A stretch of DNA of 62,168 bases, filler included, from Choristocarpus tenellus KU-1152 (lineage: Eukaryota; Protista; Phaeophyceae): the NCBI GenBank assembly GCA_964200185.2. It is 10 parts of 10 records of this genome, joined end to end, with 100 filler letters (N's around TTAATTAATTAA, not from the genome) between each part and the next. Parts side by side here need not be neighbours in the genome. Positions count along the whole stretch, not along the records: positions 30,769 to 37,344 come from CAXNAD020007836.1; positions 37,445 to 42,441 come from CAXNAD020012234.1; 8 more parts are not named here. The stretch is one strand, 5' to 3'. A program made the translations under genes and the position numbers. Shown here one piece after another: positions 30,657 to 37,987 of the stretch. Position 1 is the stretch's first letter, and the number at the start of each line of letters is the position of its first letter. A model generated the notes under the pieces. The model was not told the origin of the DNA. It saw only the letters and a program-made list of their open reading frames with translations, and did not search any database.

Positions 30657-31859
30657 ACCCACCCCCTCNNNNNNNNNNNNNNNNNNNNNNNNNNNNNNNN
30701 NNNNNNNNNNNNTTAATTAATTAANNNNNNNNNNNNNNNNNNNNNNNNNNNNNNNNNNNNNNNNNNNNCCCCCGTGAAACAGGAGGAAGAGCGAACAGAT
30801 CTAGTGTTGATTGCTGCCTGCTGTTCGGTTGAGGAATTGTCGTATGTCCATGTGGCTTGCTCTCCAACTAGAACAGCGCGATTTTTGGTCAAGGTTGTTG
30901 AGGGTCGACTGTTATCGGGGTGGGGTTGAGTCCCTTGGGATGAAAGCACAACCGTGATGAAAGTGGAAGGGGTGAACAAGTCACACGAGGGGGAGTTGAA
31001 CCTGTGCTTCCATGGTTACGTTCTTGCTTTGTAGAGGATGCTGTTCACTGTTTGGTTGGGAGGGAGCAAGTGATCTTGGCAGTGGTGTAGAAGTAAATCT
31101 TTGCACATATAATAATATGACAAACAATGATCTTTGAGCATCAGCCCAACAGTGGCCCGAACAATTGATTGAGCCGAGGAGGGTATTGGTCGGGGGCTGT
31201 AGGTGGCTGCATTGATTGTTATCGGTGATTGAGATTGCCTTTACTTGGGGAGGGGAGGGGGGCACAAATGAGATGGAGTGTTATTGTGTTTTTGTGTGTG
31301 TTGAGCATCGTTATCTAGATAGATAGTACAGCAATTCTTTGGCGTCCTCGAGAGGGGTTGCTGCGTCTGTCTCTTATCTAGATGGAGGAGGTGGTTGCGG
31401 TTATTGGAGCACAAGCTATCCTGTCCTTCATACAGTTTTCCGCTTGTTATTGGGATACTTGGCTCATCATCATCAGCAGGCTGTCATGGGTGGGTTGGTT
31501 TGTGATATAGCACCTAGCTGGAGTGAGAGGGAGAATGGCCTGTGAGGTGTGCAGTATATATATATATATATGTATATGTATATGTATATTCGTACGACAT
31601 TGTTTGGCCGGCTCTTTCTTTGTTCGGTCCAGTTGGTGTATACTTGTATTAGGTGGTGAAGAGATACCATACTAATAACGGAAAAAACGCACTGTTGGGT
31701 CATGTATGTATAATTTTTTATTAGCCAAGCTTGCTTGCACCCAGTGACAGTCCTTGCGCTCTGACATGCTGAATATGGAGGAGGTGGCGATAACTTAATA
31801 ATGACGATCTGGTCTTCATAATATATATATTATATATGAAGCGGCGTGTAACACACACA

Positions 31860-32243
31860 GAGCCAAACTAAACGAGAGGTACTCAGGTATTGGCCGTTTT
31901 GCATTATAGGCGAGTAATTCAATCTTTTGCAGTTCAACCATGTTTGGCTTAAAGAATCTGGGGAGGGGGGCGGGGTAGCGGTTTTCCGTTTGGGGTCAAT
32001 TTTTTCATGTCGCGATTATTGTGTGATTTGGTTGCATAAGTTGGATGGATAATGTAAATGCGCTTTTCCTGATTTTGGTCCAAGTGGACACCCTGGTGTA
32101 GACCCCCCCCCCAGATACTTTGGGTCTTTCTATGGATGAAGTGCTAAGTTTGGCTTGAGAACGTTTGATTTCTTGGCTGGTTGAAGCCTTTCGACAGGAT
32201 CAGGAGAATTTCCGGTAAGCCTTTGTCAAAAAAGTCGAATTTT
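31860..32243 (+). mobile_element. Family C MITE interrupted by a full family A MITE (31946-32126, minus)
   Basis: C start GAGCCAAACTAAACGAGAGG. The C sequence resumes after the A element at TTTCTATGGATGAAGTGCTAAG. Confidence 0.8.
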
Positions 32244-33073
32244 GGATCATCTTCTTAAGGTGCTGAACCAACACATGTCCGCGGGCTGGACCAGATCAAT
32301 TGCTTCCTAACATGTCCGGACCATATCCATTGGGTATTGTTTCGGTCCATGTCATCCAACTGGACTGGGGCAAACATTCTCTAACATGTCCGGACTAGGT
32401 CCAGTGGGTGTTTGTGCTGGTCTGTGTCCGCCAGCCTGCAAGTCTAACCCTTTCTTGCATGTTGCTATTTCTCGCTTCTTTCAGGCATGTCCGGACTGTG
32501 CCCACTACTAGGTGTTGTACTAGTCCATGGTGACAAACGTGTACTCTTATGTGTACTGCATGCGAAAGGTTACGTTATACTCCAGTAAAAAAAAAAGTGG
32601 TTACGTTGTACTCCAGTATGTGGATATAGATTCTATACTCCTTGAAATATTCTCTGGGTTTCTTTGTCGGTTCGATATCATAAAGAATATGTCTTATGCA
32701 CGTGGGGTGAGAATGTGAGGAGGCATAATAAGCGTATTGATTATATCTTTTTAATTTATGTATTTCCTACATATTATAGCCTTGACGAATGAGATATGAA
32801 ACTACACGGTGTAAAATGTCCAAAATCATATTTGATTCACTATTCTAAAGGGAAAGTTTATGAAGTAATATCTGAGTTTGTGGGCGGGAGAACTCTGGTA
32901 GGAATGATGTATAGGGCGGGGAGAGGTGAGGAAAGAAAAAAATAGTAGTCAAGGGTTGTGGTGGTGAATGGGGTTGGGAAGCGGTAAGTGAGGGAAAGTC
33001 TTGTGGTGTTGAGTAGTGTTGAGTTGTGAGGTGGAGCGGTAAGTGGTGTGGGGTTTTGAGTGAGTTTGAAGGG

Positions 33074-33607
33074 TGGGGTGGTAACTGGAAATCAGTGACA
33101 AAGGGGTCGCACTGGTTGGTCATCAGATGGGGTTGGTGACTGGAAATCAGTGGCCAAAGAGTCAAAGTAGCTTAGAGGGTGAGCCGCGTCCGTTTGGGGG
33201 CCAAAATCCAGTGTTGCGATTTTGATGTAATTTGGGCTACCATGTTTGTTAGGAAGGGTCAATACCCTTGTTGCAGACACACCCTTTCATAATGTATACG
33301 TTTTACCTACTTCTAAACGTTTCAAGGTAGGAAAATGTCATAAATAAACCCGTGGGAAGCCCCAAACAGACAAACAGGACAAAACTTGTGCCCCCCGAAA
33401 TACTTTCACTCAATGGAGTTCGCATTGGTTGGTTATCACATGGGTGGGGGGACTGGAAATCAGTGGTGAAGGGGTCGCAGTGGTTGATAATCGGATGTGG
33501 GTGGTGACTGGAAATCAGTGGCGAAGGGGGTTTGCACAGGTTGGTCATTGCAGGGGGGAAGGTGACTGGAAATCAGTGGTGAAGAGGTTACACTGGTTGG
33601 TCATAAA
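33074..33607. repeat. ~55-bp minisatellite (GGTGACTGGAAATCAGTGG...CACTGGTTGGTCAT) x5, interrupted by a family B MITE at 33159-33411
   Basis: Five units share the CTGGAAATCAGTG core. Unit 2 is split by GAGTCAAAGTAGCTTAGAGGG...TACTTTCACTC. Confidence 0.85.
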
Positions 33608-33917
33608 TGGTGTTACAATGGGGGGGGAGTAGGATGGGTGGAATGCAAACATAGAATAGAATAATAATAATCCAGAATTCGTGAACAAAGGAAACACAAC
33701 GATGATTTGTATTCAGTTTCAAATGATTAGTCTCTAAAATAGTTGAATACAAAATGATACAGAAATATCAATGTATATATTATATTCAAGTACTACAGCA
33801 GTAGCATAAGATACAAGATAGAAGTAGATTGAAGGGTAAATAGGGAGCCATGGCCATGACGTGGCTGCCCCAAGTGTCGAAAAAATATTAGCTGGCCAAC
33901 CATAGACAAAATATTTT

Positions 33918-34113
33918 GACATGGCCGAGTCCATGGCCATCACTTATTCAACATGATCAAGGCCACTGGCTGGTCATATACAACCAAGAGAACATGGTCG
34001 AGTCCATGACCATCACTACTCAACATGATGGCTGCTGGCCGGTCGTGTATGACCAAGTTTGGACATGACCAAGTTCATGGCCATCAACTATTTCAACATG
34101 ACTGGGCCGCTGG
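33918..34113. repeat. ~73-bp diverged tandem repeat x ~3
   Basis: ACATGGCCGAGTCCATGGCCATCAC..TTCAACATGA recurs three times. Confidence 0.8.
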
Positions 34114-35433
34114 CAGTCCCCCGACTATATGACCGATAGTGGATATGGTAACTGCCCAGCAGGGTGAAAAGTCCTGAAAAAATTAACGTAAAAAATAATA
34201 GTAGGTAAGAAGAGGAGTCAAGAACAACCAGACATGGCTCCGTAGCACCCAGTAGCCGTGACAGGATGTCATTGTTGCCAACATCCCTGGTCCTATCGTG
34301 GGGAAAAGGGGAAGGAAAAATGAACAACAGGCGGGTCGAACACCTAATCTGAACGCCTCTTATGACTTAGACATCAAGCAATGGAAAGAGGAATACAAGA
34401 ATAATTTCGCCGAGCAAGGAGTGATGGCGTGATTGTCAAACATTGAGATGCCACTACGAATACTACTGTCCCAGGGGGGCAGAAAACTCGAGCAACTATC
34501 TGCTCCAGAAGAAAAGTGGAGGTATCTCAGCCATTGTTTGATAGTGCACGTGCCCTGATCTTCTTGAGTCGCCTTACCTACTGCATTTCATGGCATGCAT
34601 GAGATGACACAACTTGGTATGTCACTAGTTCATGAAGCCCATGGTTCTATCAACCATACACTTGTGCCATCTGACTGAGTTGCTGGTATATTTTCTTATA
34701 TATTATAGTTCTGCGTCCAAAACTTCAATGTCTTTCGGAATTCAGCTACATGTCCCATACCCTCAGTTGGAAAGTGTGGTGGCAGCATTCATTAATAATG
34801 TAAGAGTCAAACCAGAGTTAGGGTTAGGGTTTCATTTTACGAATGTCGAGCAAGGTAATATATATGTCATTTTGTACAATCGCAAAAAGAGTCTTTGCTG
34901 ATTTTGTGGTGTCACTATGCATGGGGAAGGGGGAATATCAATGTTGTGTACAATATTCTTGTGGACAAGAGGCATGAAACGGATTTTTTGGATAGGGTAA
35001 TATGAAAGATGGATTGGAATGCGAAACGGTCCAAACCTGCCTCCTTCTCAATTGGTTCGGATCAAAAACCATTAATGATTGCATCATACTCATAACATGC
35101 TGTCACAACTGCAAACAGAAGAATTTGTAAATACTGAATGTGGGTCACCTCTCTTAGCCTCTCTGTACGTTGTAGTGCTGGACAAAACAATTCAAGTCCT
35201 GAATCGAAAACGGCAGTAAGGCATAACCTTACAAACGAACAGTCATAGATAATTGAGGGAAGATTCTAAAAAAGTAGAATTGACAATTACTCAGAACTAT
35301 TTGCTAGTGCTGCTGTGATTCTCTTCCCCATAGTGGATCCAGAAGTCCTTGCCAAAGCCCAACATGAGCAATATGAGGCATTTATTCAATATTTGATACA
35401 CCCAGAGAAGGCAGTATCACCTCTTAAAGAAAC

Positions 35434-35603
35434 GGTCTACACCATGTCATATTTTTTTCTTACAACGAGAAACGTATTGAAATCTTCTTACAACTGAATA
35501 TACTGCTCTTACCAGGCTGGTCTACACCATGTCATATTTTTTTCTTACAACGAGAAACGTATTGAAATCTTCTTACAACTGAATATACTGCTCTTACCAG
35601 GCT
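35434..35603. repeat. Perfect 85-bp tandem duplication
   Basis: GGTCTACACCATG...CTTACCAGGCT twice, with GG microhomology at the junction. Confidence 0.95.
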
Positions 35604-36124
35604 GGCCACAGTTGAAGAAAAACGGCCAATTTTGCGATCAGTTAGTTGCCCCAACCGAGGTCCAGAGTTAAACTTTTTGCACGTCCTTCATGACCACCGA
35701 CCTTGTAAAGGTTGGTTGCAATCTCGCTTTAACGACATATTTAACTGTGTAAGAGACAGACAGATAACAGTGGATTTTAAAAATTGAGGATGGAGCGTAC
35801 TATTAAGGATGGGTTTGACCGAAAATGGCGCGGAAAAAGCGCCGATATGCAGCACTTTTTAAGGGCCCCTTTTGGAATGGGAATCCATGCCGAAGGTGGT
35901 AGTAGGACATACTTAATCGATCTTGTACGTTTCCAATGTCCAGAAACCAAAAGGTCAAAAAAAAAATGACACCCTCCAATTTTTTGAGATACAAAATCTG
36001 AAATTGTTGGACATTTGCATTCTTCAAGAGTGAAACTATCTTAGATGGTACACGATAGCAAAAATTACATCAAAATCACAATATTGTATTTTGACCCCCA
36101 AATGGACGCGGCTCTACCCTCTAT

Positions 36125-36332
36125 TAGTCAGGTTGTTTACCCTAATAAAATTATCATAGTCACTTTTTGGTTTATCACCGGTTATGTAGACAACGGGTGC
36201 ATATCCTAGTTTTAAAAGCTGGGCTCCTACATATAATCTTTCCTTATTTCCACCATACACTACTATAGCTTGAGTGATATTCCTATTTGTATTGGTAATA
36301 TTTTTTGTATAGCTAATAAAATAGAAAAATCC
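36125..36332 (-). pseudogene. Bacterial YdcF/ElyC (DUF218) family gene fragment
   Basis: 69 stop-free codons: GFFYFISYTKNITNTNRNITQAIVVYGGNKERLYVGAQLLKLGYAPVVYITGDKPKSDYDNFIRVNNLT. This fits the DUF218 N-terminal pattern (hydrophobic segment, AIVVxGG, R, LxxxGYAPxxxxTG). AT-rich and intronless. Recognised from memory, not searched. Confidence 0.7.
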
Positions 36333-36374
36333 TGCGCTGCGCGACTGTAACAGAAATTAGCCAAAAAGTCAATT

Positions 36375-36535
36375 TCTGAATATATATATTAACAACCTTT
36401 CCGTGTTAGCTATACCATTTAGTATTTCCAGCAAAATATCGTAAAGCTGTAATCGATGAACATGTCGATCAAGTTATGAAAAATATATGCCTAGAAATAG
36501 AAAAAATATACCAAATCAAGTTTTTAGAAATAGGA
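36375..36535 (+). pseudogene. tnpA: IS200/IS605-family TnpA (Y1 HUH transposase) N-terminal fragment
   Basis: SEYI..NLSVL/LYHLVFPAKYRKAVIDEHVDQVMKNICLEIEKIYQIKFLEIG carries the YHxVxxxKYR signature. Frameshifted near the start and truncated just before the HUH motif. Confidence 0.85.
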
Positions 36536-37987
36536 GAATAATTTTACCACAAAGAACTATGATTTACTTGTCTTGTTTAACATAAAAATCCACTTAATAA
36601 AATAATTACACTATTCACAGTTTAGGGAATGGGTATTATTAAGTTCAATAAATAAAAATATATTTGAAAAATTATGAAGATTGTTGCACTTATTACCTTA
36701 TGATTGATTGTAAATAAGCTTGCTATTATCTCTAATACATCATTTCTCACTTTTCAAGACTGAAAGTAAATCCTCTAATTTATTAAAATCATTATACTCC
36801 AGGTTAGAACTATTAAAGCTAATAATTCTTAGAATATTAAAACGATGATCAGGATATATTATTGCAATGTCTGTTAAGCCAGAGATACTTTGGCTCTAAG
36901 AATACTAGAGACGACAAGAAGCAGTTCTTGAGTTTCGGTGATTTCTCTTTCTGTCGACAATTGTGTTACATGAAAAAAGGAATATCGAACAGCATACGAT
37001 TACATAGTGAAAAGAGACAGAGAGTAAACGTTTTTTGTGACCTTTTCGTTTCGTACGTTTGAAACATAATGGGTCAATGAAGGATGTGGTTTCTATTTTT
37101 ATTTGTTGGTGTAAAGATTAGAATATCATTCTAATTTTGGAAAAACCCTAACGCACGTCTTTTGGGTGTTCAATGGTATTCAAGATTACCGCTAACCTTG
37201 AATACCGTAGATCCGCTTTTTTGTGGTCTCTAGTGTTTATTTAAATACTAAAGACGCCAAAAAGCGGATTTAGTATTTAATTAAATAGTGGGTACCAGTT
37301 GGAAAGACTTCTTAGGGTTTCTGAAAATTGGAAACGTGTGAGACNNNNNNNNNNNNNNNNNNNNNNNNNNNNNNNNNNNNNNNNNNNNTTAATTAATTAA
37401 NNNNNNNNNNNNNNNNNNNNNNNNNNNNNNNNNNNNNNNNNNNNGCTTACACTGAGGTCAAACAGAGGGGGGGGGGTTCCTCAAATTTATAGGTCACATC
37501 AGAAGGGATGGGTAAGTGGTTGAAGGGAAAAAGTAATGCACTAGACAATACCTATGTTTTGTTGATGACGTTGTTGTCCTCTGGACACAGCAAAGTTGTT
37601 TGATACTGGTATATCGATCTACACACCTCCATCCCCACTATATTGGGAAGCAACAAAATCCAGTTGTTTTTTCCGATCACTGAACTAAATATAGGAAGGC
37701 TTCACAACAGACCAACAGTTAACCAGCCCGAAACCTTCTCCATGACCCAGCCAAATCATATTTTATCAAGCACCTCAGCCAGCCCTAGTGAAATATCCAC
37801 ATTGATATATTACGCTGCAACAGAACTAACCCTAACGCTCAGAAACAATTAGATACACACACAAACACACAAAATGCACTCCTGCATGATACCAGCAACA
37901 AGACAATCACATCAGACAAGTGCTTGACCTGAACCTGTCAAAACACGCCGTATCATCGAACTGGTCCGCAACTCCTTCATGTACAAG

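Follow-up and report, generated by a model that had tools for sequence, protein, structure and literature searches.

A small mosaic of Rickettsiaceae-like DNA, probably captured by end joining, within the end of a high-copy inverted-repeat element of Choristocarpus tenellus

One copy of a high-copy inverted-repeat element in the DNA of Choristocarpus tenellus KU-1152 (Phaeophyceae) is interrupted by an AT-rich block of 759 bp (36124-36882), whose content points to a bacterium of the Rickettsiaceae. Positions are those of the window, i.e., the whole stretch of 62,168 nt that was analyzed. The explanation we regard as probable is that non-functional fragments of Rickettsiaceae DNA were end-joined into a clean double-strand break in this repeat copy. 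The insert, its pieces and the host sequences that define its position are the following:

36124-36882, no strand assigned: the whole insert, of apparent bacterial origin (junction sequence, G+C, empty-site alignment, unitigs rec5 and rec7)
36125-36337, minus strand: piece A, roughly codons 19-90 out of some 186 of a Rickettsiaceae DUF218-family gene downstream of mutL-lipB, an internal slice (phmmer, DNA identity, tree)
36338-36347, no strand assigned: putative linker of 10 nt, unique, between piece A and the multi-copy IS200 part (placed from the end of unitig rec5)
36348-36541, plus strand: piece B, 5' part of an IS200-like element (Pfam Y1_Tnp, NCBIfam transpos_IS200)
36542-36684, no strand assigned: piece C, without an open frame and AT-rich (21.7% G+C), found like piece A in the marine metagenomes X1 and X4
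36685-36882, minus strand: piece D, AT-rich (27% G+C), of donor-like composition (open-frame scan)
36050-36123, plus strand: host high-copy repeat (MITE-like), subterminal part left of the insertion (85% complementary to 33181-33245; depth in run X20)
36883-36897, plus strand: terminal 14-15 bp of the host repeat, right of the insertion (junction sequence, X20 contigs, empty-site alignment)
33159-33245, minus strand: uninterrupted copy of the host repeat end, the empty-site reference (inverted-repeat pair I1, alignment)

The part of the window in which the insert lies (30769-37344) is repeat-rich and has a G+C content of about 43%. The insert itself has 28.3%, vs. 43.3% for 30769-36123, with values of 40.5 and 35.5% in its immediate flanks and of 32.7, 29.4, 21.7, and 27.3% in pieces A, B, C, and D, respectively. 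Host sequence ending in GGCTCTACCCTCTA (36123) passes directly into the insert, which runs from TTAGTC to GCCAG (36882) and is followed by AGATACTTTGGCTC; the interruption point, between CCCTCTA and AGATACTTTGGCTC (36883 onward), is located 14-15 bp inside the end of the host element. Once joined, 36030-36123 and 36883-36910 aligned without gaps over the junction to the copy at 33159-33245, with about 87% identity (CCCTCTA followed at once by AGCTAC), and in run X20 the AGATACTTTGGCTC sequence came directly after the 36123 position in 166 contigs of other copies of the repeat. Therefore, no host base was lost or duplicated at the insertion, as the earlier note had stated on reading an AT-rich block of this length that splits the repeat without base loss and without a target-site duplication (TSD). 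The placement of the junctions is unique, given that the neighboring bases (A/T at the left joint, G/A at the right one) permit no other position, and microhomology at the left joint amounts to 1 nt at most. Both flanks are high-copy repeats of nuclear type, and the location of the insert is presumably nuclear. An Rfam search returned no match within the insert, nor did blastn of the insert against phages.

The joints were also recovered from sequencing reads. Logan unitigs derive directly from the reads of a sequencing run and do not depend on the assembly that was submitted. In X20, which may be the assembled sample itself and would then be independent of the assembler and not of the library, unitig rec5 covers 36097-36377 at a depth of 33.6 and unitig rec7 covers 36655-36939 at a depth of 35.7, both with no differences and at about twice the depth of the only unique host stretch (18.6). 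In these unitigs 57 host letters lie beyond the right junction and 27 beyond the left one, the limit for 31-letter words in a high-copy repeat, and the internal joints A/B and C/D are continuous within the same two unitigs. The one run of raw reads, X21, comes from another organism of the same study, and none of its reads mapped. An assembler chimera seems unlikely, because read-derived unitigs cross both junctions at a depth that may be host-like, and the earlier argument that simple contamination does not account for the block finds some read-level support, within one run. A chimeric join of the host repeat with contaminating or symbiotic bacterial DNA, arising in the assembly or in the library, would find some ground in the nature of both flanks, high-copy repeats being where assemblers err, in the abundance of IS200-like sequence in X20 and in the few host letters at the left junction. 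It would nonetheless need two separate misjoins that happened to fall on neighboring bases in a single copy of the repeat, and it is opposed by the exact crossing of both joints, by the continuity of A/B and C/D, and by the absence of the native bacterial context of piece A from the X20 contigs, so that we hold it to be very improbable. No second contig of at least 88% likeness over piece A or D was found in X20, and the depth over piece A is exactly that of the single unitig; therefore no native bacterial copy of A at least 88% alike is present in that run. The absence of the native context of A may hint at an insert that persists without the bacterium.

Piece A carries the clearest trace of the donor. 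Its minus frame is stop-free over 80 codons (36117-36356), of which 70-71 are homologous to DUF218-family proteins, close to the 69-codon DUF218/YdcF piece described earlier from the sequence; Pfam recognizes only the full-length relatives. The 80-codon fragment gave no match to Pfam DUF218 (PF02698) even at E up to 10, but two of its full-length relatives, P0005 and P0009, score 31.3 and 40.4 bits, respectively, and exceed the cut-off of 27.6, so that its homology to the family is indirect. An exhaustive phmmer search against 1.8 billion proteins yielded 33 relatives, a family of about 186 residues, the best being P0001 (92% identity, E 7.7e-39), which is encoded directly after mutL and lipB on L002, a marine metagenome contig of 3.4 kb. 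At the DNA level piece A and L002 are 96.2% identical over 213 nt and the similarity ends abruptly on both sides, with the native gene extending beyond piece A both ways in L002, in L003 and in the X4 contig; piece A does not comprise a complete DUF218 domain or gene. MutL of L002 is 89, 84, and 77% identical to that of Rickettsiaceae metagenome-assembled genomes (MAGs), 72% to that of Ca. Megaera venefica and 65% to that of Ca. Megaera polyxenophila. The small DUF218 gene follows mutL-lipB, intact and syntenic, in every locus (L002-L014; 13 of the 13 Rickettsiaceae loci examined), and its identity to piece A falls in step with the MutL gradient (91, 76, 58, 53, and 42%). In a maximum-likelihood tree piece A grouped with L002 (100/98), then with L003 (100/99) and L004 (100/100), while the named Megaira species branched further out. 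Both the tree grouping and the conserved neighborhood expected of a Rickettsiaceae orthologue were thus found, and on this evidence a Rickettsiaceae origin is assigned to piece A. A bacterial source and a Rickettsiaceae-type donor, both proposed earlier, are hence upheld, the former also by the IS200 piece described below. The nearest relatives are uncultured marine Rickettsiaceae, and two Rickettsiaceae MAGs stand closer than the Ca. Megaira species that have names. For the insert, an origin from an organelle or a giant virus was rejected on the strength of the synteny and the tree, and tblastn of piece A against plasmids gave no match. The two nearest genome records are the Rickettsiaceae MAGs L003 (CBDBTV010000014.1) and L004 (OZ247586.1), one of which is a closed chromosome of 1.48 Mb; their hosts or sources might indicate which hosts the donor lineage naturally occupies.

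The state of piece A bears on the age of the event. Eight differences separate it from L002, and both non-synonymous ones are peculiar to L002; against the outgroups, piece A has no amino-acid change in 70 codons, no stop and no frameshift. This suggests that the slice has hardly decayed since leaving a working gene, and the insertion looks recent because the slice is free of amino-acid changes with respect to its bacterial relatives.

Piece B is joined to A across a short stretch in which TGCGC occurs twice in tandem. Unitig rec5 is unique up to 36377 and, with words of 31 letters, the start of the shared repeat would fall near 36348. Pfam and NCBIfam were run on all open pieces of the insert and IS200 was the sole match: a transposase (TnpA) pseudogene fragment on the plus strand at 36410-36538 scored 31.3 bits against Pfam Y1_Tnp (cut-off 23; profile positions 7-46 of 121) and also matched NCBIfam transpos_IS200, which bears out the TnpA N-terminus noticed earlier and, from the profile matches, supports the assignment of piece B to IS200. 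The fragment lacks a start codon, carries a 1-nt insertion directly ahead of LYHLVF, and loses its homology after FLEIGE, short of the HUH motif (DEDHVHF in relatives); an intact frame with the HUH motif and the catalytic tyrosine is not found, and the copy is dead. The nearest relative of the fragment, a truncated IS200 transposase (93% amino-acid and 88.5% nucleotide identity), is encoded on L071, a marine metagenome contig of 34% G+C; the first 25 residues of this relative are identical to those of a Ca. Megaera polyxenophila plasmid copy. Ca. Megaera plasmids and cyanobacteria or cyanobacterial plasmids tie at 76% amino-acid identity to the fragment, and therefore the IS alone does not name the donor. 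In blastn of the insert against plasmids the IS200 part alone was matched. On L071 (160-2179) the truncated TnpA (76 aa) is immediately followed by a DDE_Tnp_1 transposase of 551 aa. Two roles for the element were considered and set aside. Insertion of an IS200 into the donor DUF218 gene, as the cause of the A/B joint, was rejected in view of the approximately 10 unique nucleotides that, judging from the unitig ends, lie between the two; IS200 transposition as the vehicle was excluded since the element is a 5' stump placed, from the unitig end at 36377, about 10 unique nucleotides away from piece A.

The comparison with metagenomes brought out the composite nature of the insert. Twenty runs from 10 studies contain part of the stretch, those with a low share being mostly marine and some labelled plant metagenome, and contigs of X1 and X4, marine metagenomes that belong to separate studies, were compared with the insert. 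Both match 36123-36337 (piece A) with 5 differences in about 213 nt, and both match piece C with an identity of about 93-98% (36542-36684 in X1, 36542-36616 in X4), yet they run into unrelated sequence at 36123, 36337, 36542, and 36684. On either side of piece A, X4 reads as the native gene does in L002 (0 and 3 mismatches in 30) and in L003; X1 and X4 therefore carry the intact bacterial gene. The depths of A and C are 3.9 vs. 4.1 in X1 and 4.3 vs. 3.3 in X4, as expected if the two belong to one genome in each metagenome. Since the X1 and X4 contigs diverge at the piece boundaries, the insert is best described as a mosaic of at least four pieces (A, B, C, and D with 214, 204, 143, and 198 bp) that lie apart in the related bacteria. 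The single captured bacterial block of the earlier note is thus foreign as claimed, and composite.

Pieces C and D gave fewer clues. Neither matched the 10-kb mutL neighborhoods of 12 Rickettsiaceae loci, and an exact 32-nt pattern from piece C was absent from JGI metagenome contigs. The third open piece reported earlier corresponds to a 51-codon frame on the minus strand in piece D (36743-36895), of which the insert contributes 36743-36882, the first 4-5 codons being host repeat; no relative of it was detectable. Piece D had no relative in Pfam, in NCBIfam or in tblastn against plasmids, and no homologue in a search limited to proteins of 26-82 aa; a metagenome scan with the 51-codon frame returned pattern matches, none of which was confirmed as a relative. 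The ESM Atlas look-alikes of this frame (DUF4837, DcrB, PsbP) shared only 125 features and were taken as chance. Overall, none of the four pieces is predicted to encode a working product.

The mechanism we favor can be outlined as follows. The source would be the genome of a marine Rickettsiaceae bacterium, of an uncultured lineage related to Ca. Megaira. Several short fragments of it, of about 140-215 bp each (a slice of the DUF218 gene adjacent to mutL-lipB, an IS200 5' portion whose transposase is broken, one stretch that is non-coding and another that is unassigned), would have been linked one after another and sealed into a clean double-strand break in one copy of a very abundant host inverted-repeat element, 14-15 bp from its end. 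End-joining capture of loose DNA at double-strand breaks is known for organelle-derived inserts. The lack of a TSD and of host base loss, a microhomology of at most 1 nt and several short, internally truncated fragments arranged head to tail argue for such a capture, and the zero loss or duplication of host bases is likely a signature of end-joining repair and not of transposition. That a break was repaired, and that the fragments came together when they were integrated, is probable. One donor may have supplied all four pieces, but piece D is without a relative and piece B is equally close to cyanobacterial IS200.

The mosaic could instead have pre-existed in the donor, a contiguous stretch of 759 bp being captured whole from a scrambled, IS-ridden and pseudogene-rich region of the chromosome or of a plasmid of a Rickettsiaceae symbiont. 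Truncated IS200 copies are indeed nested with other transposases in related AT-rich marine contigs and in Ca. Megaera plasmids, and the TnpA piece is already frameshifted in an insert whose piece A is free of decay. However, an intact DUF218 gene stands at the syntenic position in each of the Rickettsiaceae loci examined, the A/B joint would not be at an IS end, with about 10 unique nucleotides intervening, and the four pieces, all short and much alike in size, are each broken off within a gene or element; we therefore deem a ready-made mosaic unlikely. It is also rather improbable that the pieces were copied, by templated filler synthesis or ectopic repair, from older Rickettsiaceae-derived DNA in the nucleus and not directly from a bacterium: the second context of piece C in X20, whose extra depth of about 19 equals the unique host depth of 18.6, and the excess depth of the IS200 part over A and D would agree with such secondary copying, yet no second copy of A or D at least 88% alike occurs in X20, and piece A lacks the neutral decay expected of an older nuclear copy. 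Direct capture of separate bacterial fragments by end joining thus remains the explanation that we prefer.

As to the recipient sequence, a copy of the host repeat of about 175 bp (31950-32125) has both ends alike in inverted orientation, and the summed contig depth over the repeat in X20 is 10^4-10^6, up to 1.2 million, vs. 18.6 at the unique flank. The element is small, ends in inverted repeats and is present in a very large number of copies, the features by which miniature inverted-repeat elements (MITEs) are recognized, and from the inverted ends of the short copy together with a depth of 10^5-10^6 the MITE label already given to this repeat is therefore reasonable. The cargo-bearing element shows no depth sign of multiplication, the insert being present in 1-2 copies vs. 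tens of thousands for the repeat. The surrounding host DNA holds further repeats. A perfect tandem duplication of an 85-bp unit (35434-35605, 2.0 copies, 100% identical) suggests a very recent event in host DNA. A 55-56-bp tandem repeat (units of the ACTGGAAATCAGTGG type, 62-83% alike) is split into two blocks, 33072-33178 and 33416-33613, between which lie the repeat copy 33159-33245 and about 170 bp of other sequence, as if that copy had been inserted into the array. A near-palindromic hairpin at 37198-37297 (arms 37224-37257 and 37264-37297, 76% complementary), with weak microRNA-precursor-like Rfam matches far under the gathering scores, is probably another small inverted-repeat element, and a 27-nt inverted repeat (35927-35953 and 37311-37337, 85% complementary), which brackets the interrupted element and its flanks, may represent the termini of some larger element that contains the MITE copy. 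A 71-73-bp unit rich in CATGGCC/CATGACC occurs three times (33914-34092, 71-83% alike), and a (GTATAT)6 microsatellite is located at 31554-31589.

Depth in X20 was uneven along the insert. The IS200-like part, from 36348, has a summed depth of 200-500, i.e., 6-15 times that of A and D, and piece C forms a unitig of its own (36541-36684) at a depth of 54.3, about 19 above its neighbors. Judging from this raised depth, the sample contains B in further copies and C in another context as well, and these may belong to other integrants or to a bacterium. Tentatively, and with considerable doubt, the insert could be the tip of a larger body of Rickettsiaceae-derived DNA in the host, or the host could currently carry a Megaira-related lineage that sheds DNA into the nucleus. 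In the former case the host would hold many such integrants, possibly spread by or clustered in hyper-abundant MITEs, and in the latter it would be an unrecognized current host of a widespread marine Megaira-related lineage.

The insert has no evident function, and its value would be historical and mechanistic. It appears to record a past or present intracellular association of this eukaryote with a marine Rickettsiaceae lineage, and would offer an unusually clean example of DNA entry, in which fragments of about 140-215 bp were stitched together with no base lost. It can serve as a marker for junction PCR, for population surveys of presence and absence and for dating, and it is a caution for contamination filters, by which such a contig might be discarded or the insert missed.

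The passage of DNA from an intracellular bacterium to a eukaryote genome is a kind of event already known, and what is notable here is the small composite structure, the clean junctions, the place within the end of a MITE and the donor, a lineage represented by marine metagenomes and MAGs alone. Mitochondrial and plastid inserts in the nucleus (NUMTs and NUPTs) that arise by non-homologous end joining have no TSD and little or no microhomology, and consist of non-contiguous fragments concatenated before or during ligation. The present insert resembles them in the missing TSD, the scant microhomology and the concatenation of several fragments, and differs in its bacterial, not organellar, source and in that no host base was lost. 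Transfers from Wolbachia to the host nucleus (nuwts) form a large class in insects and nematodes, mostly non-functional, often with IS elements and of sizes up to whole genomes. The insert shares with them the presence in a host genome of non-functional fragments of a Rickettsiales endosymbiont, IS included, whereas the bacterial family and the host group are others and the insert is a very small composite. In a fern mitogenome, Rickettsia-like DNA including transposase-related pieces was verified against contamination (PMC10027690); that case is similar in its content and in its presence inside a eukaryotic genome, but the recipient there is mitochondrial DNA, while the present insert is flanked by high-copy, nuclear-type repeats. 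For Volvox carteri, a stretch of about 9 kb in the nuclear genome, which derives from a Rickettsiaceae endosymbiont lineage and holds four gene-like regions in collinear order, was described in 2015 (PMC4324946). Both cases concern DNA of the Rickettsiaceae lineage in a eukaryote that possibly no longer harbors the bacterium, recognized by phylogeny and by synteny with symbionts; in contrast to Volvox, the insert of C. tenellus consists of 759 bp in four non-adjacent fragments inside the end of a transposable element, and its donor appears to be marine and nearer to uncultured MAGs.
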